Positions 19,235 through 44,459 are shown, counted from the stretch's first letter. The stretch is 64,000 bases of DNA from Trichoplax adhaerens (GCF_000150275.1 NW_002060968.1:529788-593787), one strand, 5' to 3'. Numbers and translations: made by a program. Notes: generated from the sequence alone by a model not told the origin.

Positions 19235-19950
19235 GTTATTGCCCTTACTGAACTACTAAAAGATATGTTGAATATAATCCAGATCAAGTTAAAATTAGAT
19301 ACTTGATACAAATCAAGTCTGAATTTGTTGATGTTTCTCTAAACTAACTTTCGTTAGATTTAGAAATTATCCCATGATATTACATAACGGCCAAAAGTAT
19401 TTAAAATTTATGAATCGACTGCAAGGTAGTAAAGCAGAATATGAATCATTCGTACCTGTCAATAAAGTGACCAATGACTCCTGAATTAACATCCAAAACA
19501 TTAGCTTTGCCTTACTTTGAACTGTACTGTAGATGCTTGCGAAAAGTCAACTCACTCTTCTAGGCTATTTGTTTTGGTTCACTGATTAATAGTATAATTT
19601 AGATGAAGCTATTTAGCCCATTTCATTAATCTGAGCTTCATTAATCCAGCATAGAGTTTAACAATTTATAAATACTTCGATTAAAATTAAAGCCTAGTAA
19701 CACCCATGTTTACTAGAATAGCTGATGATGAATCTAGGTATTTACTTGTGTCTACTAGCACTATAACAATAACATCAACTAATACATCGTATATTTACTA
19801 TTATTTCGGCTGAAATACCTATAGTACGATGTGATATTCCTCGGCTTGTTAAGTATTATCGCAGGCGATTTTCTTATTATTGATTGTATGTAGATTTTAA
19901 TCAGTATGCTAATTTGTATGTAGCTATTCTGCATGTCTAGCATTATTACG
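19235..19950 (+). pseudogene. PARP1-like pseudogene, terminal exon plus 3' flank
   Basis: gaactactaaaag|a tat gtt gaa tat aat cca gat caa gtt aaa att aga tac ttg... (YVEYNPDQVKIRYLIQIKSEFVDVSLN*) matches the last exon of the intact copies. The 3' flank is homologous to ~29960-30530. Confidence 0.85.
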
Positions 19951-22050: not shown

Positions 22051-23617
22051 ACTAATGGAAAATAGGATAAAATTTGTAGCTAATTTTGTTCTACTAATTG
22101 CACTCATCGTTGACATCACACCTAAAATTTTATAACATTTTTATGACGAATTCTCTAACGACTGAGATACTATGTAATAGTGTAACAAGCTCTGACAGAT
22201 CAGGAAAGATCTTGGAAAAGAAGAACTAAAAACACTGTAACGGTTTGCATAGAATAAACATTAATTACTAAGAGCAGGGGCTGCCAGCTTATAGACTGAG
22301 CTAAATGTGTTCGTATTCTTGAAGGCCGGGCGTTTCAACGCTGCTACAGAAATAGAAATCGTTAGGAGATCGTAAAATCTTTAAACTACGAAACGAACGT
22401 AGTAACAGTTAGGCAATGACAAGCACTAGTAAGAGAGAAGTGTAGCGGCTTCAATACGTTACCTAACTTGGGTACAACTTAAAAATTGCGAACAAGATCA
22501 TTTAACACTTACAGAATTTAGTATTAGAACGGTAGTTCCTAATTAATTATTATTACTTCACTAACAAGAAATTAAATAGAAGAGTATCACAGACTACCTT
22601 GTGACAAGTTTACTAGCCCAACATAAAGCACTTTCGTCGAGTTGCTTCTACAGATTACTGCCCTAATCTGTCAGAAGATCTTGTAAGAGTATAGTACTAC
22701 TGCTACAACGCTCAAGAACTGCCCTTTTAAAAGGCTCACAACCAGTAGACACGCTATTTTATAATCTACAAAATAGCTTTATTCAATAACACTGAAGCTT
22801 TGTGAGCAGCAATACTTTCTTAAACTCTATAATTATGCAGTCTAACGGCAACCTAGTGGCGTAGCTAAGAGCGTTGAACCTAGTTTGCCCTTATTAATAA
22901 GCACGCAACTATTCTTATGGCCAATTATTCTGGATTGACTGTAAGCTAACAATGTACGGGTACACAGTATTACTCTAAATTACTTCTGCAATTCTGTTTC
23001 GAATGGCGATGGTTAGTTTACTATTCTAAATGTTTACGTTATAATGGATTGAAATAGTTCATTAAAACTCTCTTGTGATTTTGACAATATATTCTACTCT
23101 ATGTTGAGTTTAACTTTGAAAATATTGTGTCTTACTATTTTTAACATCCCTGTTTGTTGGTATTATATAATACAGCATCTGTGGACATAGATCTTAATAT
23201 GCTTTTTACTGTGATAACGGTTTGGTGCCATGAACGCAGTGCACATATATAAATAGAATGTTCTCGTTTAATTTGAGTCTTATTTTAATTCAGTTGTCAT
23301 CTGTCACCGCAGTTAAATAATACTAGTGAAGCCTACCGAAGTACTAGCTGGCGTAGAATTTGATATTTTTTATTAAGGTTAAAAATAGAATAGAACTAAA
23401 GTCCATTAGTGAGGTTTCAATTATTCACAGTGTTGACATTTAGTGAAGTACTAACGGTCGCAGTGCCTAGAATTCATATAGTTTAAGGCCCAATCCTAAT
23501 AAACTCATTTTGCGAAACCACTTGAAGTGATAATACTTTAACCTTAGCAAATATGAACTACAAGTTCCAAGCTTGCATCTTTAATGGGTATGCCATTGTG
23601 CTAGAAATTATTGAAAC

Positions 23618-26600
23618 ATGAAGAGAAGACAAGATCATCAAACATCAGAAGTAGCAAAGAAACCGTCTGGTCATGCTGATGAACATTCCGAATATGAAGT
23701 ACGTTATTCTTATATAAATACTGTAACTTTAATTGATTACTTTCATGGATAGATTAAATATGAAATCATAATGATCATCATTTCATTTTAAATTATTGAG
23801 ATACATAATAGCCATAATTCCTTACTATAATTTATCTACACAGGAGCAAATGATGATGGTTTGGAAAACTAGAAATATACTTAGAGAAGAATGCGATAAT
23901 GAAACTTTATGGCTAATGAAATGCCAAATTGGTGAAACTCCCAGTGACGAACGAACTGTGAGGCCTTAACAAATCGTTGCAGCTTGAATTGGGCAATATT
24001 TTGCTTAATAATTCAATCATTGATGCTAACTCCTAACGGCTGTTAATACTTTAATACTCATCGTTTATCAGAATCTAAACGACTGTGCTGAGCGAATGGT
24101 ATTCGGGGCTTTCGAATCTTGTCCTAATTGTAACAAATCTTCCAAATATTTCGAGTAATTATATATTAGTAAACTTACTACTAATGACTGTAAGGTCAAG
24201 TAATGGAAATAATTGTCGTTTATAATTTAACTAGCCAAATTTATAGTAGCTTAGAAGATACTGAATCAAATGCGCTCAGTACTTTACCTCTAGGTGTACG
24301 TCTAGTTTAAAATTTTTTAATTTTCTAAGCAAAGATTAAAATTTACTCCTAGAGAAACATCGAATGGCTTTGTTTGCACAGGCGGAATCGCCAACGTTCC
24401 ATGCGAATATGTTACAGAAAAACGCGAGAGATGCGCTTGCAAAATTTCTGAAGAACTAAAGGCCAAGTCTCCGTTCCTGTAAGGATCATAATATTGTGTT
24501 GTATTTTACTTACAGTATTTATACATGGATCTTTCATCCTGTTAATAACTACTATACATCGAGATGCTGATATTACTGATTCAATTTTTACTCGTTTCAT
24601 AAAAGAGATGTTACTAGTTGGATCATGTTGAAAAATATCTTAAAATTTATTTTCACTATTCTTTGATACCGTATTGCATGCCTGTTTATGAAAATTTTAT
24701 CAAGTACAGAATACAATTTTCTTAGTAATAGTTATTCCTATGTACCTCGCGATCGGATCCGATTAAAGAAAGACGAATCATACCCTATTCCTGAAAAATC
24801 AAAGTATCGATATATTTTTAGGTACAAGTAATAATAACTGCTGGGCATATATATCTAAAATACATAAAAATATTGGTATAGGGTATTATTGTAAACTGTA
24901 GCTGTTTATAGATCATGCGCCAAGTAAATTAATACGCTATTAATTTTTCATGTATTGGTAATTTAATAAGAAAATGCTGGCTTAGAAGTAGAAAAATATA
25001 TAGTTAGATGAGTATCTAATTTTTCATATAATTCTATGTAGGCGTAACATCGTAAAGCAGAAGCCCCTAGGCAATATTCGTGTCGCTACTATTGGCAAAC
25101 TAGGAGAGAATATGGTAAGTTACATTTCTAAAAGAAAACTTCCATAAGTGTTTACCAATTATGTAATCAGTAACATTCCATTTTACACGCTGTTCTTTGC
25201 ACTCAATAATAGAAAATTATTATTACTGTACTAACTGTTTTATTTAAAGTCCAATATCAGAAAAAAAATTGAAAATTTAGGAGGAATCTTTCACGAGCAG
25301 ATCTCAAAATATGTAGATTTGTGTATTGGTCGACTAGGTTTGCTATTAGACTGCCTATAGAACAATACTTATCCTACAATACAATGTTTTCTTATAAATT
25401 TTGTACTAGTTTTACGTGAAATAACCTTTCCCTTTAGGTAAACTAAACAAGAAATTAAAAGAAGAGATCGATAATCTAGGATTGCCAACGGTTTCGGAAG
25501 AATGCTTGTCAGCTATTGCAAGTGACAACTTTGATGAGACTATCACAAAATATGGCATTAGTAATTGCACCACAGAGAAGGTATGTTCTCTTTTATTATC
25601 GATGATATTAGTGTAAAAGCAACAGTTTTGTAAATTAGATTTCATGAAACGTCTGAAAATGTATTATATGTATGTGAATCTTAATTTATAATAAACTTTT
25701 ATCAAACGTAGGTCGCCAAGATTAAGAATAAGCGAAAAGGTAAGTATATAAAATATATATATCTTGCCCAATAGAATGAGAAGTAATATGCAAATAACGT
25801 AATAGCCCTTACTTGACTATATTATTACAGGCTTTTATTCAACGAATATTATTTCGCTATCAGGCCTAGTCACTACTGACTTACACAGCGGTAATAGCTG
25901 AATCTAAAATTTATTTCATGTGATGCTATTTTAATATTAAATACTCACGAACATCATATTTTGCTATGTGCAAAAATTTATGATAGTGCTCGTATGATAA
26001 ATATTGATATTACATTAACTATAAATAAGTATAGCTGATAACGTTACTAAATGAACTTTTTTAGGATTTGAAAATGATTATAACGTTATCAAAGATTCAA
26101 ATTGTAACGTTTATAGTGCTGTAATTGAAACTGCTCCTGGCAAGTGGCTTAAATTACAGGCCCTTCAGCATAATGAATTACACAAGTTAGTTCTAAAACA
26201 GACTTTATCTTAGCGATCCTCGTTTCTATTTGTGGCATTATGATAATGCAATAACATTCTATTTACTTGAAATACAGATTTCATCGAACAGGTCTGACTT
26301 AAACGATTTTGTTAATTTTTATAGCTATTGCTTATTTACGATTGAGAGCGCTATTGATTATTCACATGCAATCAAAAGCAACATTAAAGTAATTATTGAA
26401 TACTTAATAATACTTGATGATTAGTATCAGTATTCTTTTACGTTAAATGTGCTTTCCAAATATCGGAATTTACTTGTAATAATAATGTAAAGAGATATAA
26501 GTTATAAGCCTGTTTTACTTATTTATAGTATACGTGTTCGAAAGCTGAAGCCATGATGGCCTTTGATGAGCTTTATTACGAAAACACAGGTATGAAAGTA

Positions 26601-29600
26601 CTTACGCTGCATTAGCATTATCTTGTACACAGAGTGATAAAATTCGCTAAATTTTGGATCTATTCTCATAGGAGTTACATGTTTCAAAGATACTCAGATC
26701 AAGCGAAAAATTCAAAAGGGTTACCCTGTTGGCACCTCATATATTAGCGATAATGTACGGATAAATAATATTTCATTTGCTTTATTAATTTATCTATTTA
26801 ATATAATTACATATTTCTATCATTAATTGGCTACGACTAGGATAACGAAGCCATTCAATTGGATAACTTAATTTCCAGTTCTTCTAGTGCCAAAATCTCG
26901 CCTAACATCGAAAAGCTGTTGAAGATGATCTTTAACGTCAAGCTGCTATCAGCCTATCTGTTAGACTACCAAGTATAGTATAAAATATTTATTAAAGTAT
27001 AGTGCTAATTACAAAGATTTACAATAAGATTACGGATTCTAAATTGTTTGTTTTAATGTAATGTCATTAGGTTGATGTAGAAAAAATAAAACTGAAAGCT
27101 TTAACGACTGACAGAGTAGAAAAAGCAGTGCAATTACTTCATCAAATAGATTCGGTTAGTCTATCGTGGGTAAACACAATTCTGTTGCTGCTTGCATTTT
27201 TATTGCAAACTAATTCTGATGTAGCGAAAATTGAAGCTAGGAGTCTACTTTCTAACATACTCTTACTAGTATTTTCAGTATATAGTTTATCTAAAAGAAA
27301 TGATACTCCTACGATGATAAGATCATAGTAGCTGTAGACTTGTTTCATATAACTTAAAGATGCTGCTTATTAAACATTATTAATATCCAGTATATTACAC
27401 GCGGATAGGTTTCATCAAAGACATCGAGTAAACAATTAGAAAGAATAAATACCATAAAAAAGCTTAAAGAGAAATTTTTCAATTTAATTTACAAAGACTT
27501 ACATAAAATAGATGGATGCCGTTATTGCGATGATGAGTATAATCTGAGGGTAATTTCCTTTGTTTTAATATCTTATGCACAGGATTATTACTAACTGTTC
27601 ATACTAATTTTAAATATATATAATAGAAGACGGTAATAAATAAATATTCAGCAAAGTTATAAATCGGTATTATAAAGCGTAATATCTTATTTTGTTTCAG
27701 GAAATATGGTCTAACATGGATGATGTTATGGATATTGCTGTATGCTATGATTTAATAGAAAACGCTAAAAGAGTTGGCAAAGATCTTTTGTATAAATTAT
27801 ATCAAAGCATGAAGATAGAACTAGAAGTATGTCAAAGTTACATACCCTCTTGATGAATTGTTAAGAGCACTAGGATATACTAATGTTACAAGATTAATTA
27901 TCGTAACTACTATATTATACATGTATCATACCCTTAATTATTTTATCATTGATACTGTTTAGCCGTTATTGCATAACAGTGATGAATTCAATATGATCTT
28001 CGAGTATGGAAGTAAAGTCTGTCAAAGGAAACACGACCAATTTTACAATTTAAGCATTGAAGAGGTCGTAAGATTAATTAATGTTGAGAGGAACTACTGA
28101 ATTATTTCAATTTACTGATTTATCCATACTCGAAATTATGCGTTATTTTATTAATCTACTAGGCGGTTAATTTCGCTAGGTATATAAGGTTCAAAATCAC
28201 AAAAGTCATAAAAAATACGAAAAATATTGTACTATGGATAACCGTATGTTATTATGGCTTGGCAATCGTGTAATTAATTACAGTCGAATACTTACTAAGG
28301 GTTTACAACCAATGGCGAAGAGAGATTTAAGCTATGTAGGTACAACGGTTAAACCATTTGTATATAAGTTTGTACTTTGCCTTCTCTCGATACCGTTATT
28401 AAATTAAATAGGGTTATTACTCAGGATATAATGTAATGTAAAATTAAATTTGTAATTAAGTAGCTTATTTTATATCATATTCTCTACCATAATCATATAT
28501 TGTTGTGATTTAGCTCATGTGAGTAGATCGAGGGAAACAGTAGACTAGTTTATAGTAATCCTTTATAAGATACTAGCATGACACTTCATGATACGGAAGG
28601 CATAAATTGTCATAACAATAATTCAGCTCTATAGTTACGCTAAATCTTTAAGCATTAAGTTCTCGACTATGAACTTACTTATTATAATATAAGTTAGTTC
28701 ACTTTGATATTAACTTGCTATGTAAAATCCTTGACGCCAAATAGTCTACGCCATAACAGCTGCTTTTTATTAGTTTTATATTCAGTAATGCTACATAATA
28801 TAGCAGTATATTGCATGAAGAGTACGCTTAACTTAAGTTACGTAAGCATATTAGTCTATCGAGTAACCTATTTCTCTCAAAAGTTTTACAAACTTAATTA
28901 TTTTGATTTAAAATTTTGATATAAAATATTAAATAGTACGAACTTATTAGATTTTTAATACACATATAACTCTATAGAATGTAGGTTTTCCGCACGGGAA
29001 AGGAATTTATTTTTCAGGTAAATATATTCATGTATCACAAGTATGTTAGTAACTGGACTTTGTAAGGAAACCGACGTTGTATAATATTAATTATTTATTT
29101 ATATATTTTTGATTTATACGTCAAGATATGTTTTGGCAGGTAATACAAAAGCAGATTATTTAACTTGAAATTATTCTATCTCCATCTAACTAAGTCATAG
29201 ATTATCATGATATATTAGTAGTATACTAAAACACGCACGAATGGTTTTATCTCTAGGCTGCTTTAGACTGTGGTTTAAGTATTACAAATTCGACAGGACT
29301 ATTAATGCTATGTGAAGTAGCACTTGGGAGGATGTACGCTCTATAAAGAACTGTTTTGTATAAATTATTGAGATCAATGCTGTATTAGATACTGTAGTTT
29401 TTTTGGCTCACTCTCTAGCTTTTTACATTATTATAGAATGCACTGCAAACATTTTGTTAAAATGATGTATTTTAGATTACATTGTTTTTGATTGATTTCA
29501 CTATAGCACCAATGAACAATCAGATCTATCGAAAGCGCGTCGTACGGCTGATAGTTTTAAATGTAAATATCGACATTAATACACCAAACAGATTTATGGT

Positions 29601-29956
29601 TCGAATTACAGGTATGATTGCTAAAGTTTAAATTTAATTTTTATGTTTATACGATGTAGTCAAAGGAGAAGTCGGACCCGATCCTGATGGAGATATTACA
29701 ATAGAGAATGGTGTTGTCGTACCGTTAGGAGATATTGTTGGAGACTTCGACTGGCCAGATGGGAATAAGTATCTTGCATATCTCTTTATGATTTCTATAT
29801 GTCGTGAATTGATTATTACATAGTTAGTGTATCAAGTATTATGTTATTTTCCTTAACCGAACTACTAAAAGATACGTCATATACAATCCAGATCAAGTTA
29901 AAATCAGATATTTGGTACTAGTCAAATCTGAATTTGTCGATGCTTCTCAAGATTGA
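23618..29956 (+). CDS. PARP1-like protein A (Zn3/PADR1-BRCT-WGR-like-PARP regulatory-ART fold; catalytic triad L-Y-K), 26 exons, ~780 aa
   Basis: Manually spliced, phase-consistent GT-AG exons: 23618-23698, 23844-23957, 24072-24154, 24353-24478, 24726-24821, 25042-25114, 25250-25337, 25438-25580, 25712-25739, 25831-25890, 26065-26185, 26325-26388, 26529-26589, 26672-26754, 26841-26972, 27071-27154, 27409-27549, 27701-27826, 27963-28064, 28180-28335, 28978-29017, 29126-29139, 29257-29333, 29507-29562, 29660-29768, 29872-29956 (2343 nt). PARP1-like motifs: MVFGAFESCPNC..VCTG..PC, KPLGNIRVATIGKL..IENLGG, KLLKMIFNV, NRMLLWLG, GKGIYFSD, LMLCEVALG, GPDPDG..GVVVPLG, YVIYNPDQVKIRYL. Confidence 0.9.
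29769..29871 (+). other. U12-type (minor spliceosome) intron, gene A
   Basis: 5' GTATCTT, consensus branch TTCCTTAAC at 29849-29857 about 14 nt before the AG, and no polypyrimidine tract. Confidence 0.8.
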
Positions 29957-31279
29957 CCTTCGTTATCTTCATAAAGTAAGCACTTACATAATGTTTAATC
30001 TACTATGAGCATAATCAAGCAATTTTGGGGAATGGTATATATCTATTAAACCAAAATAAGGATCATGCATACCTTCATTAAGGTTACCGATGAAACTACA
30101 GTATATTAAAATTGACATTTAGCCCTACCTTCTTTTAAAGTTTACATTCCTGCGAATGTAAGCAAATTCTTCTAGAGTGTTTAATTGCTTAGCCTGGACT
30201 TCAATAATTTAACACGCGTTGTAGCATTTTGTAGGTTCGCCGATTAGTATTACAGCCGAATAGCACCCATGTCTGTTAAAATTTTTGACGATCGATCTAA
30301 GAATTTATTTGTAATAGTTTAAATCGTCTAACGACCCATTTCGACTGATGTATTCTACATTTACTCTTACTGTAATAAGGTAACGTATACTTTTTAGGAT
30401 ATGATTCCCTATCTTTGATACATTGTTATCACAGGCGATTTCCTTATTGCTCATTGATAACGTCATTTGCAGTTTTCATTTAGCATCTTACGATAAGGTG
30501 TATAATGCTACTTGTGTATTCCTAGCAGTATATTTAGTGTCAACATTTTAATTCGTGTTGCAGCATTAGTTCATCGGTGAATAAGATTTCGATATTGTTT
30601 CATTTAGACTAAATAAATGCCTGGTATTATGAAGGTGTTGTAGTCGGTCTATTGAATTATTTAAGTCGATATTTAATCCTTATGAATCGTATTTTTTTCT
30701 TATTTGATTGTTGATCCTTAGCTGGATAAATTATGAGTACTTTACAATTCAGAAAGTAAATTGCGGAACTTTTTGTAGATATCATTGTTGTTATCTAATT
30801 ATCTGTGCTTAAAAATTAATTCAACAGCTACAGTAGTATTATAAAAGTAAATTATCAAAACAATGAAATTTGGCATAGATTCGCACAGTAGTACATTAGG
30901 TAATGCATCTACTAGGAATGATTAGAATTGATACAACACAATATGAAACAGTGTAGATTAGCCAAATCTCCTTATACCGTGGCAGTATTTTTTATTTATA
31001 GTTTTTACTTTTATGATTAACAACTAGCATCTCTTTATACCTAAAGCAGTGTTCTCGGCTGCATGGCAGTCGATACTTGCATCGTCGAAATTTCGGCGAT
31101 AGGTTAGGCCATTGTATTGCATGATGCAAAGTAAACGCTTAACAAGGGTATCAGGATTAGGTTTAGCAATCCCTTAGGTTTTCAAGCGATTGACTCTGAA
31201 TGTGAGTCGTTAAAAATAGAGAAATTTCTAAAATGACACAGGTCTATCGCTTCATATTCCCAGCTTAGCGTCCACAATT

Positions 31280-31560
31280 ACGTTATTAAGCATACAGACT
31301 TTCTACATCCTATAAGGCTGACTTCGTATTGCTAGGATACTGTGAACACGCCTTGCTGCCTTAATTAGCTGAACTCGTTACCAAATATAGCAAAAGCAAC
31401 TGAAATTGCTTCATATAAAATATCTGCTACGACACAGTAAATGTTTAACAGTAGATATTGAGCACGAGAAATTTTCAAAGTTAAGTTCAAGAACGATTTG
31501 CTATTTAGCAGCTCATGTTGCAGATGAACTATTTCTAATATCGTCAGGCCCAATGATGGA
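31280..31560 (-). pseudogene. Possible highly decayed GPCR TM1-TM2 remnant (duplicate at ~43700-43930)
   Basis: QYLLLNIYCVVADILY resembles TM2 (LNLAVADIL). No further confident motifs. Confidence 0.25.
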
Positions 31561-32859
31561 TTTGCAGAAAGAGTCCCGCAAAGCCAAAGCTTAGCCAGCC
31601 ATTTTAAAAATTGTTATATGTTAAGGAGTGCCTTGAGCCTCTAATCAAAATTGATCAGGAAAAAGAGGAAAAGTACACTTGTTTACTACGTTGAAGAAAC
31701 CGTAATAGTAATGTCAGCTATCTATAATGTCGCATATTTAGAAAAGATTGCATTACGTAATGACCTCAGCTAACTATATTAGTAAAGTAATGATCAATGA
31801 TGGGTGATCGCTAGGATAGTTCAAAACGCGTTCATGGCGCTTTCACTGATTTTGGTTTGGTGCATGCATAGTCGCGTCGTAGGAGCTTAAAATGTGATGA
31901 CAAACCCAAGTCAACAACTGGGTGGAGTTAGTCAATTTTATTGCTGTTGTACAGTAATTGCTCTAAACAGTGGTATTGGCTTGATGATCGTAATTCTACG
32001 GTAGGTTATATTACGATATAACTGATTGGTGATGAGCATGTTTTCCATTATCCACAGAAATAGCTTGCCAGCAGCCCACTAAAGTGACGAATGAAACAGC
32101 TGCTGCTTGGTAATTAATTCGGATAAAGACAACATCTCCTATGACATCATAAAATACTGTATACATTGGATTATTAGCCCAGTTGTAACTCTAATGTAAT
32201 TAAAAGGCATAATCCAGCCCGTGCAAGTACAACATATAGTATTTAGAAGTTATTATCTTGCAGCCGATCAGATTGTTATTCGTATATTAAGTAGCGAAAG
32301 AACTGCTTTACAGCATGGAGGTTGTCCGTAGAGCTAAGCTAGGCAGTTTTGAAAGTAGTCTTATCCGCAATTTTCTCCATTTCAAATTGAAGATTAATTA
32401 TTGGATAATTTATTGTGGGATTAACAAGACTACGCCGTGACAAGTAAACTGCTTATTATTATGAAAAAGTGACCCAGTATGCTTTAATTGCTCTTAATGG
32501 TGCAACCAGTCTTGTAGATAAGCAATAAAGCTGATTTATAAATTTAACCTCTGATAATGGATTGCAGTATTACCACAAATTCCTTGCCTAACTATCTGTG
32601 TTGGATTCATCATTTTATAGAAAAGTTAACTCGCTAATGCAGGCATAATGATGAAATAAAGGCATCCAAATCATTTGTTATTGCTGATAGTCGTTTTCAG
32701 TGCCATACTCTAGATATTAAAACCTGATTCTATCATCATTTAGTAGTTATCGAAAGGGCTTGTAAGATATGCACTCGCAAGTGAATCGTTTTGAGGGCAC
32801 GATGTATCATTTTGATAGCCTAGCCTCCATTATTATTGCAGCTAGTTTGTAATTGTTCA

Positions 32860-33075
32860 TTTATTCTCGTACTTTGCAATAAGTGTCGTCCTCTATAGTC
32901 ATTTTAAATTAAATTATAACCGTCAATATTCCAAGGTTTCCCGATCAACTCATCGAATTCGTCCCAGAATTAAAGAACACCACGGCATGTTAGGAAAATA
33001 GAACTACTTTGAAGAGATTACGCTTCCAATTTTGAAGTGCAATCAATCTAGCCTACTGGTGATTTTCATTTTCCA
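32860..33075 (+). repeat. Orphan third copy of the GPCR 3' flank (homologous to 17350-17560 and, inverted, to 5140-5350)
   Basis: caatattccaaggtttcccgatc and cttccaattttgaagtgcaatcaatctagcct match 17409-17545. No GPCR CDS lies upstream of it. Confidence 0.8.
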
Positions 33076-33499
33076 TAAAGTTCAACAATTTGTAGAATCA
33101 TCGATAAAATATACGCCTACCGTCTTCGTTTCAGTTGCAGCCACAAAATTTAGTCCATTTCGCTGAATGAGATTTTAAATATGGCTTCTTTTAAAACGGC
33201 AATGAAAAAGCCGTATGTACGCTTAACTTTAACTAAATATAATAGTTACCACAGTGCAACGTGTCCAACATACTGCATACTGTATTATGTTACGAATCTC
33301 TATTTAATTTAGCAAGAGTTTATCTGCAGACCTATATGGAGTCATTTGAGCTAGCTGCAATAGTTTTGTGTTTAAAAGTTAAATGGCAATACGAAATATA
33401 GCACTGCTTAACGTCGCTCTTAGTGTCAGTTGTGCGAAGTAAATTACTTGTAGAGGATTGTTGGTATAATGAAACGGTTCAAAAGCAGTTCATTATACT

Positions 33500-34860
33500 G
33501 TCACTGAGTTTTCCTGGAAGAAAACTGAGGATAACTTCAAGGAAAGTTGCTTTTCCATGCATGCTACTGTATATGCCGTATCTACTTTGCCTGCATAAGT
33601 GCTGCATGTTCCAGTCGCTTAAAAAATTGGCTCCAACGCTAAAGTCATCAGCTTAGTGGAACTGCTCAATGATTGCTATCCTTTGCTACATCATAATCAC
33701 ATTACAATACAACTGATATAGCTATCAGTTTGTTTTCTAAAGCCGCCAAAATACCCTGACGGCAGCCCATCGAAGGGGTGAAAGGAATAGCTGCCATGAT
33801 GGTCTAATGACGTAGTGCTTGGGTTTTACAACCTCTGTTCGCAATCATCTAACTCAAAATCTGAGTTAATAAAATTGAGCAAACCTCTAACTTAACGCAA
33901 GATCACAGATACATCACTACTGATATTGCTTTCAGCTTGTTTTCTAAAAGCCATCATAATACCCTAGCAGTAGCCTATCGAAGCAATTAAAGTTTAGGTA
34001 GGCAGTACTTCTACATGAAGTTAGATAGTGTCTGGCTTAGTATATATGTAACGGTGACGGAGTATCTGCTAATTCCCTCGAATATGGCTTAAACTGACTT
34101 TGCCAAGACGCATAGTAAAATGTTACTTCCAGCGGCTGATCTGTTTTCCCTTCACTTTGCCAGACTACGGCCAGGATGTCTTGCGACAGAAAGCGTACAG
34201 GCTCTATATTATGGAGTCTATATTCAATAAATGATGCTGTAAGATGCACGATGCATTTTTATCCTGCATTAATTACTACTACACTATTCTATATTGCTGT
34301 TTGCAACAATCGTCATGGACTATGTTCTCGATGCCAATGACTACTCCTCCCAGTTGTTTACTTTGGCATCAATTCAAACCTTGAGCTTATGGAATGTGCT
34401 TGGGCAAGCAATGATGGATGGAATTCATTCTTTGATGCGGTATATCGCTTTTGTACTTGTCTCAGGATTGTTTTAGTTCCTGTTGAATTCGTCACAATAG
34501 CATCTATGCCAACGGGTAGTCTACGAAAGATGCCTACCATTATAATTCTTGTTGTTCCTTGGTTGTTCTTTTAGCTCACATGCCATTACTGTGAGCAAGC
34601 TCCAATCGAATCCTGATTCTTTGCATTGATTTTCTTTTAGTCAAGAAACATTACTACCTACCAAAGGATTACAGTTATCGTAATACAACCATTCACCGAC
34701 GGAAGCATCATTCAATATTCAAGCTAAAGGTAGACTTATCAAGCTCTTATTTACTTTTAAGTCTGCTATATTGGATTTCGTACGCGCCTAATAGCCTATT
34801 CTCATCGTTGAGGATGTTATTTATCATTGATGATTGATATTCGTTAGTTCCTGCACATTA
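33500..34860 (-). pseudogene. Decayed kelch-repeat-like gene remnant, copy 2
   Basis: Homologous to 20720-22050 (IDAKVNNWEE, PSMGCRQGILAALENKLIAI). Contains an internal repeat, 33708-33775 vs 33918-33983. Confidence 0.45.
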
Positions 34861-36016
34861 CTTGACTGATGAGAAACGGGAGTCAATTGGTTGCTAAATC
34901 TCTTCTACTGACAGTACTCAGCGTGTGCATGTACTAAAAATTTGATAGCATACTTTTGCTAACTGATCGTTGAACGACCGAGATACTGCATAACAGTGCT
35001 ACAAGCTCTGACAGATCAAGAAAAACTTCCTACAACAGCAGTATTTCAAAAAAATGGTCTAAAAACAGAGAAACGTTTCTGCTCCAATAACCGTACTTGT
35101 TTACACCTAAAGGATTGCGAATAAGATCACTAAACACTTACAGAATTGAGTATTAGAACGGTAGTTCTTGATTCGTTATTACTTTACTAACGGGAAATTA
35201 AAGTGAATGATTTTATCATCTTGATCAAAACAGTAAGATTCAGTCAGTGTAGCCAACTATTCAAGAAATGGAAGAGCTTTGTGCCTAGTCTATCTTTATT
35301 AACTAGCACCAAACAATATTGAAGGTCAAATATTCTGGATATACTGTTTGCTAGCAATGTACTCTTTAATACACCAAAACTAGTTTTTTCAATAGTGTTT
35401 AGAATGGCAATGGTTGTTTTGCTTTTCTAAAAAAAGAATCCATAATAAATTGGAATAGTTCAAGAATACTCTGTTGTGATTCTGAAGGTATACTCTATAC
35501 TCTATGACAGGTTTAACCTGCGTGGTTTTGTCTCTCACTATTTTTTAATATTACTGTTTGTTTCGTCGTATATCACACAGCGGTTGTGGACACAGATCAT
35601 AATATGCCAGTTACTGTGATAGCGGTTTGGTGCTATGACCGCAATATTTGTATATAAGTAGAATGTTCTTGTCAATTAAGAGTCTTTTTTCATTTAATCG
35701 TCATCTGTCATAGCAGTAGAATAATACTAGCGAAGCCTACCGAAGTACTAGCTAGTGTAGAATTTGTTATTTGTAAGTAAGATTAAAAATAAAATAGAAG
35801 CAAAATTCCCTTGAAGCGGTTTCAATTATATTCACATTTCGTGCAGTACTAACAGTCACAGAACCTAATATTCACCTAGTTTAAGGCCCAATCCTAACAA
35901 ACTCTCTTTGCCAAACCACTTGTCATAATAACAGTTTAACCTAAGCATATATTGAACTACGCGTATCAAATTTAAATTTTTAATGGTCTCGCAATTGTGT
36001 TAGAAATCATTGAAGC

Positions 36017-39000
36017 ATGAAGAGAAAACAAGATCATCAAGCATCAAAAGCAGCAAAGAGAATGGCTAGTCATGCCGATGAACATTCCAAATATGAAGTA
36101 CGTTATTCTGCTATAAATACTGTAACTTAAATGGATTACTTTCATGGATAGATTAAATATGAAATCATGATGATAATCATCATATCATTTTAAATCATAG
36201 TTATGCAAAATAATAATAATTCTTTACTATAATTTATATATACACAGGAGCAAATGATGATGGTTTGGAAAACTAGAAATATACTTAGAGAAGAATGCGA
36301 TAAAGAAACTTTACGGCTAATAAAGTCTCAAAATGGTGAAACTCCCACTAGCGAACAGACTGTGAGGCCTTAATAAATTGTTGTAGCTTGAATTGGTCAA
36401 AATTCTGCTTAATCGTTTAATCATCGATGCTAATTGCTAACGATTGTCAATACTTTAATACTTGTCGTTTATCAGAATCTAAACGACTGCGCTGAGCGAA
36501 TAGTATTCGGAGCTTTCAAACCTTGTCCTAATTGTAACAAATCTTCCAAATATTTCAAGTAATTATATAATAGTAAACTTACTACTAATGACATTAAGGT
36601 CAAGTAATGGAAATAATTGTATTTTATAATTTAACTAGCCAAATTTTATAGTAGCTTAGACAATACTGATACAAACATTCTCAGAAACTATGCCTCCAGA
36701 TTTATAGAGTAAGATTTTTCAATCTATCTAAGTAAGGATTAAAATTTACTCCTAGAGAAACATCGAATGGCTTTGTTTGCACAGGTGGAATCGCCAACAT
36801 TCCATGCGAATATGTTACAGAAAAACGCGAGAGATGCGCTTGCAAAATTTCTGAAGAACTAAAGGCCAAGTCTCCCTTTCTGTTAGTATCATAATATTAC
36901 GTTGTATATTACTTATTAATATATCGATCCCTCATGCTGTTAATAACGACTATGATGTGTCAAGATGCTGATATGACTGATTGAATTTTTACTCGTTTCA
37001 AAAAGAGATCTTACTAGTTGAATCTTTAAAATATTATCTTAAAATTTATTGCCATTTCTCTTTGATATCTTGCATGCTTGTTTATGATAATTTTATCAAG
37101 TACAGAAAAAAATTTTCTTAGTAATAGTTATTCCTATACACCTCTCGATCGGATCCAATTAAACAAAGACGAATCATGCTTTATTCCTGAAAAATTAAAG
37201 CATCGATGTATCCATAGGTACAAACAATAATAACTGTACAGCAAATATCTAAAATACGTAGAAATTTTAATAGGGTGTTAGTGTAAACTGTAGCTGTTTT
37301 TAGATTATGCGCCAAGCAAAATATTACGCTATTTATTATTCCATGTTTTGGTAGTTTATTGAATGAACGTTAGTTTAGAAATAGAGATTTATCTGGTTGC
37401 AAGTATTATAATCTTTCATACAATTCTATGTAGAGAGAGTATCGTAAAGCAGAAGCCCCTAGGCAATATTCGCGTAGCTACTATTGGCAAGCTAGAAGAG
37501 AATATGGTAAGTTACCTTTCTAAAAGAAAATTTTCAGAAATGTTTATTAACTATATGAATTTAATCAGTAACCTTACGTTTACGTCATTGTTCTTTGCAT
37601 TCATTATTAGAAAGCTAATGCTATACTAACTATATAATACACATTTAAAGTCCAATATCAGGAAGAAAATTGAAAATTTAGGAGGAATTTTTCATGAACA
37701 GATCTCAAAATATGTAGATTTGTGTGTTGGTCGACTAGGTATGATTTAGACAGTCTCTAGAAAATAACAATCCTGCAATGCAGTGATATGTTTTTAATTT
37801 TGTCCTAGTTTTACATGAGATAACGTTTTCCTTTAGATAAACTAAACAAGAAATTAAAAGAAGAGATCGATAATCTAGGATTGCCTACAGTTTCAGAAGA
37901 ATGCCTGTCAGCTATTACAGGTGACAACTTTGATGAGACTATCACGAAATATGGCGTTAGTAATTGCACTGCAGAGAAGGTAACTACTCTTTTATTATCG
38001 TTGATGTTACTGTAAAAGCAACAGCTTTGTAAATTAGATTTACATGAAACGTTTGAAAATGTATTATATGTATGTGAATCTTAATTATAATAAACTTTTA
38101 TCAAGCGCAGGTCGCCAAGATTAAGAATACACGAAAAGGTAACAGTATACACTCGTACATAAATGACTCCTTACTATATAGCACCCATCATAACGTACTA
38201 TTGCAAATTGTACGACGATATCTTGCCCAATAGAATGTGAAGCAATATGCAAATAGCGTAATAGCTCTTACTCGAATATATTATTACAGGCTTTTACTCA
38301 ACAAATATCATTTCGCCATCTGGCCTAGCTATCACTGATCCACACAGCGGTAATAGCTGAATATAAACTAATCTCATTTGATACTATTTTTATATGAGAT
38401 ACTTACAAATAGCAATTTTTGCTACGTGAATAAATTCATAATAATACTCGTATGATAAAGACTGACTAGATATATGATTTTAAGTATCGATGGAACATTA
38501 ACTATAATTAGGTATAGCCGATAATCATACTAAATGAACTTTATTAGGACTTGAAAATGATTATAGCGTTATCAAAGATCCAAATTGTAACATTTACAGT
38601 GCTGTAATTGAAACTTCTCCTGGCGAGTGGCTTAAATTACAAGCTCTTCAGCATAATAAATTACATAAGTTAGTTCTAATACAGACTTTTATCTTAGCTG
38701 TCCTTGTTTCTGTTTATTACATCATAATGCAATGAAGTATTCTTAGTTAAGATGCTGTACAGATTTTATTAACCGAATAGTTACTAAAATTATTTTGTTA
38801 AATTTTAACAGCTATTGCTTATTTACGATGGAGAGTGCTATTGATTATTCACATGTGATCAGAAGCAGGATTAAAGTAATTATTGAATACTTAATAACGC
38901 TTTTTGATTGACATCAGTTTTCTTCTACTTTAAATGTGCTTCTTATAAAAATCGGAATTCACTTGTAATAAAAATGTAAGAGATATAGGCTATAAGCCTG

Positions 39001-42000
39001 TTTTTGCTAATTTATAGTGTATGTATTCAAAAGTTGAAGCCATGATGGCCTTTGATGAGCTTTATTACGAAAACACAGGTATGAAAGTACTTACACTATA
39101 TCAGCTTTATCTGGTACACGGAGTGTAAATTTCGCTAAATTTTGGATCGATTCTCGTAGGAATTACATGTTTCAAAGATACTCAGATCAAGCGAAAAGTT
39201 CAAAAGGGTTACCCTGTTGGCACCTCATATATTAGCGATAATGTACGGATAAGTAATATTTCATTTGCTTTATTAATTTATCTATTTAATATAATTACAC
39301 ATTTCTATCATTAATTGGCTACGACTAGGATAAAGAAGCCATTCAATTGGATAACTTAATTTCCAGTTCTTCTAGTGCCAAAATCTCGCCTAACATCGAA
39401 AAGCTGTTGAAGATAATCTTTAACGTCAAGCTGCTATCAGCCTATCTGTTAGACTACCAAGTATAGTATAAAATATTTATTAAAGTATAGTGCTAATTAC
39501 AAAGATTTACAATAAGATTACGGATTCTAAATTGTTTGTTTTAATGTAATGTCATTAGGTTGATGTAGAAAAAATAAAACTGAAAGCTTTAACGACTGAC
39601 AGAGTAGAAAAAGCAGTGCAATTACTTCATCAAATAGATTCGGTTAGTCTATTATAGGTAAACGTAACTCATTTTTTTGTTTGTATTTTCATTGCGAACT
39701 GATACTGACGCAACGAAAATTAAAGCTAGGAGTCTACCTTCTAACATACTCTTCCTGGTATTTTCAGTATATAGTTTATCTAAAAGAAATAACACTCCTA
39801 CGATGATAAGATCATAGTAGCTGTAGACTTGTATCATAAAATTGAAAGATGCTGCTTATTAAGCATTATTAATATCCATCGTATTACATGTGCATAGGTT
39901 TCATCAAAGATGTCGAGTAAAAACATACAAAGAAAAAATAAAATAATAAAGCTTAAAGAGAAATTTTTCAATTTAATTTACAAAGACTTACATAAAATCG
40001 ATGGATTCCGTTATTGCGATGATGAGTATAATCTGAGGGTAATTTCCTTTGTTTTAATATCTTATGCACAGAATTATTACTAACTGTTCATACTAATTTT
40101 AAATATATATAATAGAAGACGGTAATAGATAAATATTCAGTAAAGTTATAAATCGGTATTATAAAGCGTAATATCTTATTTTGTTTCAGGAAATATGGTC
40201 TAACATGGATGATGTTATGGATATTGCTGTATGCTATGATTTAATAGAAAACACTAAAAGAGTTGGCAAAGATCTTTTGTATAAATTATATCAAAGCATG
40301 AAGATAGAACTAGAAGTATGTCAAAGTTACATACCCTCTTGATGAATTGTTAAGAGCACTAGGATATACTACTGTTACAAGATTAATCATTGTAACTACT
40401 ATATTATACATGTATCATACCCTTAATTATTTTATCATTGATACTGTTTAGCCGTTATTGCGTAGCAGTGATGAATTCAATATGATCTTTGAGTATGGAA
40501 GTAAAGTCTGTAAAAAGAAACGCGACCAATTTTACAATTTAAGCATTGAAGAGGTCGTAAGATTAATTAATGTTGAGAGGAACTACTGAATTATTTCAAT
40601 TTACTGATTTATCCATACTCGAAATTATGCGTTATTTTATTAATCTACTAGGCGCTTAATTTCACTAGGTATATAAGGTTCAAAATCACAAAAGTCATAA
40701 AAAATATGAAAAATATTGTACTATGGATAACCGTATGTTATTATGGCTTGGCAATCGTGTAATTAATTACAGTCGAATACTTACTAAGGGTTTACAACCA
40801 ATGGCGAAGAGAGATTTTCGCGATGTAGGTATAACGGTTAAATCATTTGTATATAAGTTTGTGCTTTGCGTTCTCTCTGATACCGTTATTAAATGAGGGT
40901 TATAACTCAGGGCATAATGCAGTGTAAAATTAAATTTGTAATTAAGTAGCTTATTTTATATCATATTCTCTACCATAATCATATATTGTTGTGATTTAGC
41001 TCATGTGAGTAGATCGAGGGAAACAGTAGACTAGTTTATAGTAATCCTTTATAAGATACTAGCCTGACACTTCATGATACGGAAGGCCTAAATTGTCATA
41101 ACAATAATTCAGCTCAATAGTTACTCTAAATCTTTAAACATTAAGTTTTCGACTATGAACTTACTTATTATAATATAAGTTAGTTCAACTCTGATATTAA
41201 CTTGCTATGTAAAATCCTTGACGCCAAATAGTCTACGCCATAACAGCTGCCTTTTATTAGTTTTATATTCAGTGATGCTACATAATATAGCAGTGTATTG
41301 CATGAAGAGTACGCTTAAGTTAAGTTACGTAAGCATATTAGTCTATCGAGTAACCTATTTCTCTCAAAAGTTTTACAAACTTAATTATTTTGATTTAAAA
41401 TTTTGATATAAAATACTAAATAGTACGAAATTATTAGATTTTTAATACACATATAACTCTATAGAATGTAGGTTTTCCGCACGGGAAAGGAATTTATTTT
41501 TCAGGTAAATATATTCATGTATCACAAGTATGTTAGTAACTGGACTTTGTAAGGAAACCGACGTTGTATAATATTAATTATTTATTTATATATTTTTGAT
41601 TTATATGTCAAGATATGTTTTGGCAGGTAATACAAAAGCAGATTATTTAACTTGAAATTATTCTATCTCCATCTAACTAAATCATAGATTATCATGCTAT
41701 ATTAGTAGTATACTAAAACACGCACGAATGGTTTTATCTCTAGGCTGCTTTAGACTGTGGTTTAAGTATTACAAATTCGACAGGACTATTAATGCTATGT
41801 GAAGTAGCACTTGGGAGGATGTACGCTCTATAAAGAACTGTTTTGTATAAATTATTGAGATCAATGCTGTATTAGATACTGTAGTTTTTTTGGCTCACTC
41901 TCTAGCTTTTTACATTATTATAGAATGCACTGCAAACATTTTGTTAAAATGATGTATTTTAGATTACATTGTTTTTGATTGATTTCACTATAGCACCAAT

Positions 42001-42443
42001 GAACAATCAGATCTATCGAAAGCGCGTCGTACGGCTGATAGTTTTAAATGTAAATATCGACATTAATACACCAAACAGATTTATGGTTCGAATTATAAAT
42101 ATGATTGCTAAAGTTTAAATTTAATTTTTATGTTTATACGATGTAGTCAAAGGAAAAGTCGGACCCGATCCTGATGGAGATGTTACAATAGAGAATGGTG
42201 TTGTCGTACCGTTAGGAGATATTGTTGGAGACTTCGACTGGCCAGATGGGAATAAGTATCTTGCATATCTCTTTATGATTTCTATATGTCGTGAATTGAT
42301 TATTACATAGTTAGTGTATCAAGTATTATGTTATTTTCCTTAACCGAACTACTAAAAGATACGTCATATACAATCCAGATCAAGTTAAAATCAGATATTT
42401 GGTACTAGTCAAATCTGAATTTGTCGATGCTTCTCAAGGTTAA
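36017..42443 (+). CDS. PARP1-like protein B (same 26-exon structure, L-Y-K triad)
   Basis: The exons of copy A are present with conserved GT-AG sites and no stops seen. First exon 36017-36097, LWLG Leu codon 40747-40749, 14-nt microexon 41613-41626, last exon 42359-42443 ending TAA. Confidence 0.9.
42256..42358 (+). other. U12-type intron, gene B
   Basis: GTATCTT...TTCCTTAAC...AAAG, as in gene A. Confidence 0.8.
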
Positions 42444-44459
42444 CGATCGTTGTCTTTAAAAAGTAAGCACTTACATAATGTTTAATCTACTATGAGCATA
42501 ACCATGCAATTTTGGAGGGAATTGCGTATATCTAATAAACCAAAATAAGGATCATGCATACCTTCATTAAGGTTACCAATGAAACCTATATTAAAATTGA
42601 CATTTAGCCCTACCTTCTTTTAAAGTTTACTTGCTTACAAATGTAAGCAAATTCTTCTAGAGTGTTTAATTGCTTAGCCTGGACTTCATTAATTTAACAC
42701 GCGTTGTAGCATTTTGTAGGTTCGCCGATAAGTATTACAGCCAAATAGCACCCATGTCTGATAAAATTGCTAACGATCGATCTAAGAATTTATTTGCATT
42801 AGTTAAAATTGTCTAACAACCCATTTTAAGTGATTTAGTTTATATTTACTGTCAATAAGGTAACTCATACTTGTCTACGATGTGATTTTCCTATCTTTGA
42901 TACATTATTATCGTAGGCGATTTTCTTGTTCCTAATTGATAATGTTTTTTTGTAGTTTTCATAAAGTATGTTATGATAATTTGTACAATGTAACTTGTGC
43001 ATTTCTAGAAATATATTTATTGTCATCATTTTAATTCCTACTGCAGCTTTGGTTCATCCGTTAATAAATTTCAATATTGTTTCATTTAGACTAAAATAAA
43101 TGTGTGGTATTGTAAAGGTGTTGCAGTCGGTCTATTAGATAAGTTAAGCCAATATTTAATCCTTAGCTGGATAAATTATGAGTGCTTTACAATTCACAAG
43201 GCAAATTACAGTACTTCTTGTGGATGTTATTGTTGTAATCTAAGCAAACTGCCTAAAAATTAGTTCAACAGCTACAGTATTGCTATAGAAATAAATGATT
43301 AAAACAAATGAAATTTGGCTTAAATTCGTACGTTAGTACGTTAAGTAATGCATTTATTAAGAATGATTAAAATTGGTACAACACAATATGAGACAGTGCA
43401 GATTAGCCAAACTCTACTAGCACCTTTTTAATATTGTTCATTTTTGGTGTTTAGCATATGAATTAATAACTAGCATCTTTTTATATCTAAAATAGTGTTC
43501 TCGCTTAGATGATAGTCATTACTCACATTGGCTAAATTTCGGCGATAGGCTACGTCCTTGTATTGCATGATACAAAAGCGCTCAACTAGGGTATCATAAT
43601 TAGGTTTAGCAATCCCTTAGGTTTTCAAGCGATTAACTCTGAATCTGAGTTATTAAAACAAAGGAATTTCTAATTCTACTTCATGTAAGGCTTACTTTGT
43701 ATTAATTGGATACTTTGAACATACCCTATTGCTGTAACTAGCTGAATTCACTAGGAAAGATTACGAAAGCAGGTGAAATTGCTTCATACAGAATATCTGT
43801 TACAATATACTAAACGTTCAACTGCAGACATTTAGCACGATAATTATTCAAAGTCAAGTTCAAGAATGATTTGCTATTAGCTGGTTACGCTGAAGAATGA
43901 ACCTTTTTCAAATATTATCAGGTCTGATGATTACTTTGCAGGAAAAGTCCTTGCCGAACCGAAGCTTGACTGGCCATTTTTAAAACTGATGCATGCTTAA
44001 GTTATGCCTTGAGCAAGCACTGCTTAACTTCTGTTTTCACAACATTTATGCTAAATTCTTTAATTGTAATTTATACTATATTCAGTTAGAAATCTACGAA
44101 AACTAAATTTGAGTAGTCCTTGCCTTAAACCTTTAATCCAAACCAATTAGGAAGAAGAACAAAAACATACTTGTTTATATTTTAAGGAAATAGCAAGAGT
44201 AGTGTCAACTATCTACGATGTTGTATAGGTAGAGCAGATTGCATTAAGCAGTGACATATGCAAACCTAAGGCAGTGATCTCAGCTAGTTATATATTAGTA
44301 AAGTAATGAGCGCTGATAGCTGATGGATAGTTCAAAAGCTATTGATGATCCTTTCACTAATTTTAATTTTGTGCATGCATAGGCACGTCGTAGGAGCTTT
44401 AAATATGATCTCAAGCTAAGGTAAACAACTCGGTGGAGCGAATCAATTTTATAGCTGTT

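Follow-up and report, generated by a model that had tools for sequence, protein, structure and literature searches.

A 64,000-nucleotide stretch of the Trichoplax adhaerens genome (G000:C1389:529788-593787; hereafter the window, with positions counted from its first letter) harbours two tandem genes, copy 1 and copy 2, that descend from the gene for PARP1 and read L-Y-K where the ADP-ribosyltransferase (ART) domain of PARP1 has the catalytic triad H-Y-E. We hold with good, though not full, confidence that both are expressed, selectively maintained, 5′-truncated PARP1 duplicates which most likely encode nuclear, non-catalytic pseudo-PARPs. In PARP1, NAD+ is anchored through its ribose by the histidine and held through its nicotinamide by Ser904 and Tyr907, and Glu988 is the residue that activates transfer. 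The genome, 105.6 Mb in size with a GC content of about 30%, contains two further copies (3 and 4) downstream on the same contig, and these are drawn upon below wherever they bear on the two genes of the window.

Gene structure and active-site replacements

Self-comparison of the window delineates two plus-strand tandem units (23001-31231 and 35402-43673) that are 83-90% identical in DNA sequence, introns included (Table 1). Gene models were obtained with a purpose-written protein-to-genome spliced aligner guided by P0002, the public model TRIADDRAFT_61730 of copy 3, and were then corrected from RNA evidence. Copy 1 comprises 26 exons and 25 GT-AG introns with an uninterrupted 780-amino-acid open reading frame (ORF) that runs from the ATG at 23618 to the TGA at 29954-29956; no complete public gene model was found for it. 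Copy 2 likewise has 26 exons, GT-AG introns throughout and 780 amino acids, shares 89% amino acid identity with copy 1 and ends at the stop codon 42441-42443; its public model TRIADDRAFT_61728 (P0001) is partial and mis-spliced. The outer bounds that the initial annotation had given to the pair, the start codon of copy 1 and the stop codon of copy 2, are exact.

Table 1. Features of the PARP1-like array and of the surrounding sequence (window positions unless stated otherwise)
Feature	Position	Strand	Evidence or remark
Copy 1, PARP1-derived gene	23618-29956	+	ORF and GT-AG check; spliced alignment to copy 3 model P0002; RNA junctions
Copy 1 exons 1-9	23618-23698, 23844-23957, 24072-24154, 24353-24478, 24726-24821, 25042-25114, 25250-25337, 25438-25580, 25712-25739	+	
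Copy 1 exons 10-18	25831-25890, 26065-26185, 26325-26388, 26529-26589, 26672-26754, 26841-26972, 27071-27154, 27409-27549, 27701-27826	+	
Copy 1 exons 19-26	27963-28064, 28180-28335, 28978-29017, 29126-29139, 29257-29333, 29507-29562, 29660-29768, 29872-29956	+	
Copy 1 exon 20, N-R-M-L-L-W-L-G-N-R	28180-28335	+	Sequence; PDB alignment to human PARP1; Pfam PARP E=1.6e-7 (exon alone)
Copy 1 exon 21, G-K-G-I-Y-F-S	28978-29017	+	Tyr codon 29008-29010, retained PARP1 Y896; RNA junctions on both sides
Copy 1 exon 22, 14-nt microexon, (D)-M-F-W-Q	29126-29139	+	Gln replaces K903; RNA contigs; also in TaPARP1 and copies 2-4
Copy 1 exon 23, begins A-A-L-D-C	29257-29333	+	Ala replaces S904, Asp (codon 29266-29268) replaces Y907; alignment of copy 3 to human PARP1 and family alignment
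Copy 1 exons 25 (29660-29768) and 26 (29872-29956)	29660-29956	+	Lys codon (AA 29767-29768, A 29872) replaces E988
Copy 2, paralogue gene	36017-42443	+	Spliced alignment; sequence; diagnostic bases in X8 RNA contigs
Copy 2 key codons	Leu 40747-40749; Tyr 41495-41497; microexon 41613-41626; Lys 42254-42255 and 42359	+	
Copy 3 (TRIADDRAFT_61730), N-Y-Q	window-equivalent 80694-87222		Downstream, same contig; same 26-exon plan
Copy 4 (TRIADDRAFT_61731 + 61732), K-D-Q	window-equivalent ~91.6-98.0 kb		Downstream, same contig; same 26-exon plan
Decayed third copy in window, exon 11-like relic	12112-12238	+	blastn, 70-76% identity
Decayed third copy in window, exon 14/15-like relic	13000-13326	+	blastn, 70-76% identity
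Decayed third copy in window, last-exon relic	19263-19338	+	77% amino acid identity to exon 26
Intronless rhodopsin-family receptor genes (six)	5389-6468 (-), 16231-17319 (+), 47558-48586 (-), 52911-53915 (-), 55895-56707 (-), 57792-58793 (-)	as given	

The motifs G-K-G-I-Y-F-S, D-M-F-W-Q, A-A-L-D-C and G-N-K-Y-V-I-Y-N-P-D-Q-V appear only after splicing. A leucine codon, CTT (28258-28260 in copy 1 and 40747-40749 in copy 2), takes the place of PARP1 H862, asparagine takes that of S864, and in a phmmer comparison with the PDB the leucine of exon 20 falls under the histidine of human PARP1 W-H-G-S-R. The equivalents of K903, S904, Y907 and E988 were assigned by alignment to human PARP1 and to TaPARP1, the canonical PARP1 of Trichoplax. 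On this assignment copies 1 and 2 combine the L-Y-K triad with S864N, K903Q, S904A and Y907D; they have neither H-Y-E nor the nicotinamide-binding serine and tyrosine. All six replacements listed in the initial annotation are present (H862L, S864N, K903Q, S904A, Y907D and E988K), and together they constitute the residue loss characteristic of a pseudo-PARP; the triad itself is corroborated by sequence, by PDB alignment and by an RNA junction that assembles the lysine codon. Because every residue that anchors NAD+ or activates transfer is replaced, canonical NAD+ binding and (poly)ADP-ribose synthesis have most likely been lost.

Mono-ADP-ribosylating PARPs retain the histidine and the tyrosine and replace the glutamate alone, by I, L, V, T or Y. 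A reading of the Trichoplax proteins as such H-Y-hydrophobic enzymes was rejected, as the histidine has become leucine in copies 1 and 2, asparagine in copy 3 and lysine in copy 4, and the glutamate has given way to lysine or glutamine, neither of which is hydrophobic.

The 14-nt microexon, which encodes the active-site turn D-M-x-x-K/Q, is common to canonical Trichoplax PARP1 and all four copies. TRIADDRAFT_61728 lacks it and runs on into the intron, reading G-K-Y-I-H-V-S-Q, and the JGI PARP1 model 19562 (used in Citarelli et al. 2010) has A-G-L-K-I-L where the spliced gene reads A-D-M-V-S-K. The public models of these loci and of canonical Trichoplax PARP1 miss the microexon, and consequently PARP surveys based on gene catalogues misread them.

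Descent from PARP1 and domain architecture

TaPARP1 is encoded on the minus strand of C1414 at 11.868-11.877 Mb (G000:C1414:11868000-11877999) and possesses Zn1, Zn2, PADR1, W-G-R and H-Y-E. Copy 1 shares 21 of its 25 introns with this gene in both position and phase, and none with TaPARP2; the microexon is among the common features, and the Glu codon of TaPARP1 is interrupted by an intron that corresponds in position and phase to the one in the Lys codon of the copies. The copy 3 model P0002 can be aligned with full-length human PARP1 (9mi8) from Zn3 to ART with E=4.5e-52, pairing W-N-G-N-R with W-H-G-S-R, G-K-G-V-Y-F-S-D-M-M-W-K-A-A-L-D-C with G-K-G-I-Y-F-A-D-M-V-S-K-S-A-N-Y-C and I-K-D-Y-V-A with S-W-G-R-V-G. 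The description of the locus as two intact tandem PARP1-derived genes is thereby borne out.

A maximum likelihood tree of the WGR-HD-ART region (HD, helical domain) takes the form (TaPARP1,(TaP1L_B,(TaP1L_A,((c1,c2),(c3,c4))))), c1 to c4 denoting copies 1 to 4, with 99-100% support; its taxon sampling is thin and includes no other animal PARP1, and it does not date the duplications. The four copies thus nest among the Trichoplax PARP1 paralogues, and the long branch that leads to them is indicative of accelerated evolution. TaP1L_A and TaP1L_B, which branch off as successive sisters to the family of the window, are two head-to-head PARP1-like genes with zf-PARP exons (G000:C1414:11658500-11678999). 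TaP1L_A has H-Y-E and has lost the W-G-R motif; TaP1L_B reads Y-Y-D, with tyrosine and glutamine replacing His862-Gly863 and aspartate replacing Glu988, and it aligns poorly in its middle part.

From the linker that carries the nuclear localisation signal (NLS) onwards, the domain order is that of canonical PARP1, the Clade 1B architecture: in copy 1 the NLS linker is followed by Zn3/PADR1, a BRCT-like region, a WGR-like region, HD and ART. The first residues of copy 1 (M-K-R-R ... K-K) align to the bipartite NLS linker of TaPARP1, and the ORF begins there. A genome-wide search for the zf-PARP fingers Zn1 and Zn2 (PF00645) gave matches on C1414, C1409 and C1387 and none on C1389, the contig of the window, and tblastn of the N-terminal 230 amino acids of TaPARP1 against 134 kb around the array returned noise only (best E=0.44). 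Because the introns are shared, the ORF starts in the NLS linker and no zinc-finger remnants occur in the 134 kb, the copies are identified as 5′-truncated PARP1 duplicates.

Profile searches recovered part of the set of domains that the initial annotation had listed for checking: on the public models the Pfam entries PADR1_N, Zn_ribbon_PADR1, PARP_reg and PARP score above threshold, BRCT is sub-threshold and WGR goes undetected. The catalytic fold and the helical domain are evident in P0001 (copy 2; PARP, PF00644, E=1.6e-23; PARP_reg, PF02877, E=2.4e-8) and in P0002 (copy 3; PARP E=7.1e-28; PARP_reg E=1.3e-14). When copy 1 was searched exon by exon, the PARP cut-off was reached by exon 20 alone, with PADR1 and BRCT sub-threshold, and in a genome-wide scan with the PARP_reg profile the window copies went undetected at the level of single exons. 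Zn3/PADR1 (PF21728 and PF08063) scores significantly in P0002 and P0014, both of them paralogue models; searched on its own, copy 1 exon 4 stays under the cut-off (E=0.0043). The C-x2-C...C...C ligand pattern of Zn3 is conserved in all four copies, and its W318 is replaced. BRCT_2 scores E=2e-4 on the copy 4 model (22 bits, under the cut-off of 27.3) and E=0.11 on copy 1 exon 7; phmmer aligns the region to the BRCT segment of human PARP1, and its introns match those of TaPARP1. Pfam WGR has no match in the public models or in the copy 1 exons; the corresponding segment aligns to residues 544-642 of human PARP1 and reads E-S-A-I-D in copy 1 and K-D-Y-V-A in copy 3 where PARP1 has S-W-G-R-V.

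The encoded proteins would accordingly comprise the NLS linker, Zn3/PADR1, the BRCT-like and WGR-like regions, the helical regulatory domain and the ART fold. The NLS-like N-terminus predicts a nuclear location. Activation by DNA breaks would have been lost along with Zn1, Zn2, the W-G-R motif and W318 of Zn3, and the likeliest role may be that of a scaffold for, or a competitor for, PARP1 partners via the Zn3, BRCT-like and HD-ART surfaces. The scaffold, decoy or dominant-negative regulator that the initial annotation had suggested is likewise a putative role.

Transcription, selection and competing explanations

Contigs from four public runs, of which X15 is declared as RNA-Seq, were aligned to positions 24000-29999. 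Spliced contigs in X8 and X15 display GT..AG joints at nearly every predicted intron of copy 1, including the junctions 28335>28978, 29017>microexon 29126-29139>29257, 29333>29507, 29562>29660 and 29768>29872. The letters of the microexon are found between 29017 and 29257 in contigs of both runs, and junction 29768>29872 joins AA to A, a lysine codon at the position of PARP1 Glu988. Among the RNA-contig differences listed there is no variant letter at the Leu codon or at the Lys-forming junction; the transcripts therefore do not restore the histidine or the glutamate, and the splice model on which the initial annotation relied is upheld. In exons 4, 17, 18 and 20, X8 contigs agree with copy 2 at 11 of 11 diagnostic bases, and a spliced X8 contig (record 23) spanning exons 8-11 matches copy 1; exon 8 and exon 11 each have 11 positions at which the two copies differ. 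Since copy-specific contigs exist for both, copies 1 and 2 are both transcribed and spliced. One X15 contig (second organism label; 29507-29999) bears five changes found in neither copy (29525, 29679, 29701, 29919 and 29921), four of them non-synonymous; because its junctions and its lysine codon are those of copy 1, it represents another allele of this gene or a strain variant of it.

Ratios of non-synonymous to synonymous divergence (omega) were estimated by NG86 with bootstrap, YN00 having failed or been unstable for saturated pairs. Copy 1 and copy 2 differ by dN 0.053 and dS 0.105 (omega 0.50; bootstrap confidence interval 0.36-0.76; Fisher p=3e-4), copy 3 and copy 4 by dN 0.179 and dS 0.610 (omega 0.29; p=4e-30), and copy 1 and copy 3 by dN of about 0.41 with saturated dS (>2.8; omega about 0.12; p=2e-63). 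All three ratios lie significantly below 1, which together with the spliced transcripts from both copies identifies the genes as expressed and under purifying selection; the claim of a maintained paralogue family, intact and transcribed, stands. The losses of S904, Y907 and the glutamate predate the split between copies 1/2 and copies 3/4, whose synonymous sites are saturated, and the family has therefore long been kept after the loss of its catalytic site.

The same data bear on whether the genes are recent duplicates that are turning into pseudogenes, with no function and with transcription a leftover of the parent promoter. We consider this very unlikely. It could appeal to the copy 1-copy 2 omega, which lies well above typical housekeeping values, to the decayed neighbouring copy, to the stop in exon 1 of copy 4 and to the fast turnover of tandem arrays. 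It is countered by the age of S904A, Y907D and the glutamate loss relative to the saturated split, by omega values below 1 with p from 3e-4 down to the order of 1e-63, and by the 5′ exons of copies 1 and 2, which differ by 9.8% as compared with about 15% in neighbouring introns. All 25 introns are moreover GT-AG in the four copies, save for a GC donor in intron 1 of copy 4; copies 1-3 have full-length ORFs of 780-786 codons and copy 4 is open from exon 2 on; and splicing is accurate down to the inclusion of the microexon.

Divergence between copies 1 and 2 is unevenly distributed. Introns 14-25 (26755-29871 versus 39243-42358) differ by 0-3.6%, compared with 12-22% for introns 1-7 and 10-13, the exception within the low-divergence stretch being intron 16 at 13.8%. 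The HD-ART halves have thus been homogenised recently, probably by gene conversion or else as a mosaic duplication, and L-Y-K in the two copies is therefore one event and not two independent retentions: both L-Y-K genes reported by the initial annotation are real, but they are not independent witnesses. Near-identical 3′ halves are also what an assembly artefact would produce, for instance two haplotypes placed in tandem. This explanation is exceedingly improbable and was rejected, considering that the 5′ halves differ by 12-22% in their introns and carry indels, that both copies reside on one 800-kb contig with about 6 kb of unrelated sequence between them, and that RNA contigs specific to copy 1 and to copy 2 occur in one and the same run.

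A further alternative is that the ART pocket has been rewired, either to bind another ligand (ADP-ribose, poly(ADP-ribose) or another nucleotide) or to act as a non-canonical transferase, with Asp907 paired to Lys988 in copies 1/2 or to Lys903 in copies 3/4. To our knowledge, there is no active ARTD enzyme that lacks the histidine. We regard this alternative as unlikely, although ART is the best conserved domain between the pairs (57% amino acid identity versus 41-50% elsewhere; omega about 0.2), G863, Y896 and F897 are kept, and the combinations are reciprocal, Q903 with K988 in copies 1/2 and K903 with Q988 in copies 3/4, always alongside D907. The charge-pair pattern comes from two lineages only; position 862 is not fixed (L, N or K) and copy 4 has lost Y896, for which relaxation offers the better fit. 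Arabidopsis PARP3, with milder changes, cannot bind NAD+ (PMC6701155).

A number of points nonetheless weigh against the pseudo-PARP reading. With G863, Y896 and F897 the beta-sheet core has also been retained, and this, together with the conservation of ART, may be compatible with a ligand-binding role. The inactivity is a prediction from residues, and an AlphaFold2 model of P0002, built from a 9-row alignment, has a mean pLDDT of 48.9 with only Zn3 confident and lends no structural support to a closure of the pocket. L-Y-K counts as a single event, the omega of 0.5 between copies 1 and 2 denotes only moderate constraint, and within the homogenised HD/ART half the few differences yield omega >=1 with no statistical power. 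The orthologue in Trichoplax sp. H2, where the annotation fuses copies 3 and 4 into one protein of 1506 aa (P0013, RDD38205.1), is 98.6-99% identical and too close to test constraint. Finally, in the segment at window-equivalent 91642-91735, copy 4 carries an in-frame TAA as codon 15 of its exon 1, so that erosion may be under way in parts of the family.

Searches for homologous proteins with P0002, P0001 and P0013 found no placozoan orthologues of copies 1/2 within the length ranges allowed, P0013 giving no match of any kind. HMMER with exon 20 against 1.84 billion representatives gave six matches, P0001 and P0002 among them and none outside Trichoplax; the query is short, and the blank means little.

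Known pseudo-PARPs, the tandem family and its neighbourhood

PARP13/ZAP (Y-Y-V) and PARP9 (Q-Y-T) are vertebrate pseudo-PARPs in which selection has kept the ART fold although the catalytic histidine and glutamate are gone, and they act by binding. They belong to the CCCH/WWE and macro-PARP clades and have other accessory domains, in contrast to the Trichoplax proteins, which are PARP1 derivatives with HD, Zn3 and a BRCT-like region. Caspase cleavage of PARP1 yields an 89-kDa fragment that starts where the NLS meets Zn3, without Zn1 and Zn2, and in this proteolytic product H-Y-E is intact; copies 1-4 start at the same boundary from their first codon, but are encoded as such by genes and have no H-Y-E. 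Relative to canonical PARP1, with which they share the order of domains from the NLS linker on and the intron pattern including the microexon, the copies are without Zn1/Zn2 and W-G-R, and Zn3 W318 as well as H862, S864, K903, S904, Y907 and E988 are replaced. PARP9 has been listed as a pseudo-PARP in the literature too (PMC4245714).

The closest known counterpart is Arabidopsis PARP3, a BRCT-WGR-HD-ART protein with no recognised DNA-binding domain that reads C-V-E, is inactive and does not bind NAD+ (Gu et al. 2019, PMC6701155). Like the Trichoplax copies this plant Clade 1D PARP is a retained member of the PARP1 clade with HD, ART and an altered triad and without DNA-binding zinc fingers; its inactivity was established by experiment, whereas that of the copies is predicted. 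AtPARP3 keeps the glutamate, whereas the Trichoplax copies replace both histidine and glutamate and keep the tyrosine. They are, moreover, of independent origin, nested as they are among Trichoplax PARP1 paralogues and with PARP1 introns, and they differ in keeping Zn3/PADR1, in losing the W-G-R motif and in forming a tandem family in which position 862 varies. The novelty that the initial annotation accorded to a dead ART domain on a PARP1 chassis was therefore overstated, as AtPARP3 provides a precedent and TRIADDRAFT_61730 had already appeared in an alignment: within the PARP1 clade, Citarelli et al. (2010; PMC2964712) describe the triad as altered only in the land-plant Clade 1D proteins, and their supplementary Clade 1 alignment includes Trichoplax 61730 with W-N-G-N-R. 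Since 61730 is in that alignment and only Clade 1D is named as altered, the Trichoplax family has been seen earlier but not described; no paper about the loci came up in a literature search by gene identifier. The copies most likely constitute an independently evolved animal member of the pseudo-PARP kind, judging by their sequences.

PARP1-derived pseudoenzymes are rare, plant PARP3 being the only characterised case that we found. Trichoplax adds an example from an early-branching metazoan, whose four paralogues have reached different stages, namely L-Y-K, N-Y-Q, K-D-Q and a relic, and which has two intermediate relatives that still have zinc fingers. Together they make a natural series in which functions beyond catalysis can be sought for individual parts of the PARP1 scaffold (Zn3, BRCT, HD-ART contacts). 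The interest is moderate and specialist, and no long-standing question is opened. A more far-reaching proposal, which we hold to be quite unlikely, is a placozoan-specific PARP1 radiation in which the break sensor and catalysis were lost stepwise (TaP1L_B with Y-Y-D, TaP1L_A with H-Y-E and no W-G-R, then copies 1-4 without Zn1/2) and an exchange of charges (Asp907 with Lys988 or Lys903) reshaped the NAD+ groove for a new ligand or partner. If true, the copies would be gene-encoded, enzyme-dead analogues of the 89-kDa PARP1 fragment, with a sensor or decoy function in signalling related to stress or genome defence.

Copies 3 and 4 have about 49% amino acid identity to copies 1 and 2 and are likewise without Zn1/Zn2, W-G-R, S904, Y907 and the glutamate. 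S904A, Y907D and the loss of the glutamate are common to all four copies, and position 862 reads L, L, N and K within an otherwise invariant motif, a pattern that would be expected if only that site had lost its job. The last two exons of copy 3 also occur as an isolated duplicate (93% amino acid identity to P0002 residues 697-740) on the same contig, at window-equivalent ~109.1-109.4 kb, with no upstream exons detected for it there. The initial annotation had also stated that a third copy once existed, and within the window it survives as relics only (Table 1), which coincide with weaker self-comparison matches around 11.6-13.9 kb and 19.1-19.4 kb. Neither tblastn nor forced spliced alignment yields a continuous ORF for it. 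This copy illustrates what unselected decay looks like at the locus.

Interleaved with the PARP-like array are six intronless genes for rhodopsin-family G-protein-coupled receptors, and the four that were tested score E=1e-22 to 3e-27 with 7tm_1. The one at 16231-17319 sits within the decayed third PARP copy, between its relics, and the one at 55895-56707 looks truncated, with 270 amino acids. Pfam gives no match for a 575-amino-acid ORF at 420-2147 on the plus strand, which includes a segment rich in Cys and His and may be part of a mobile element.

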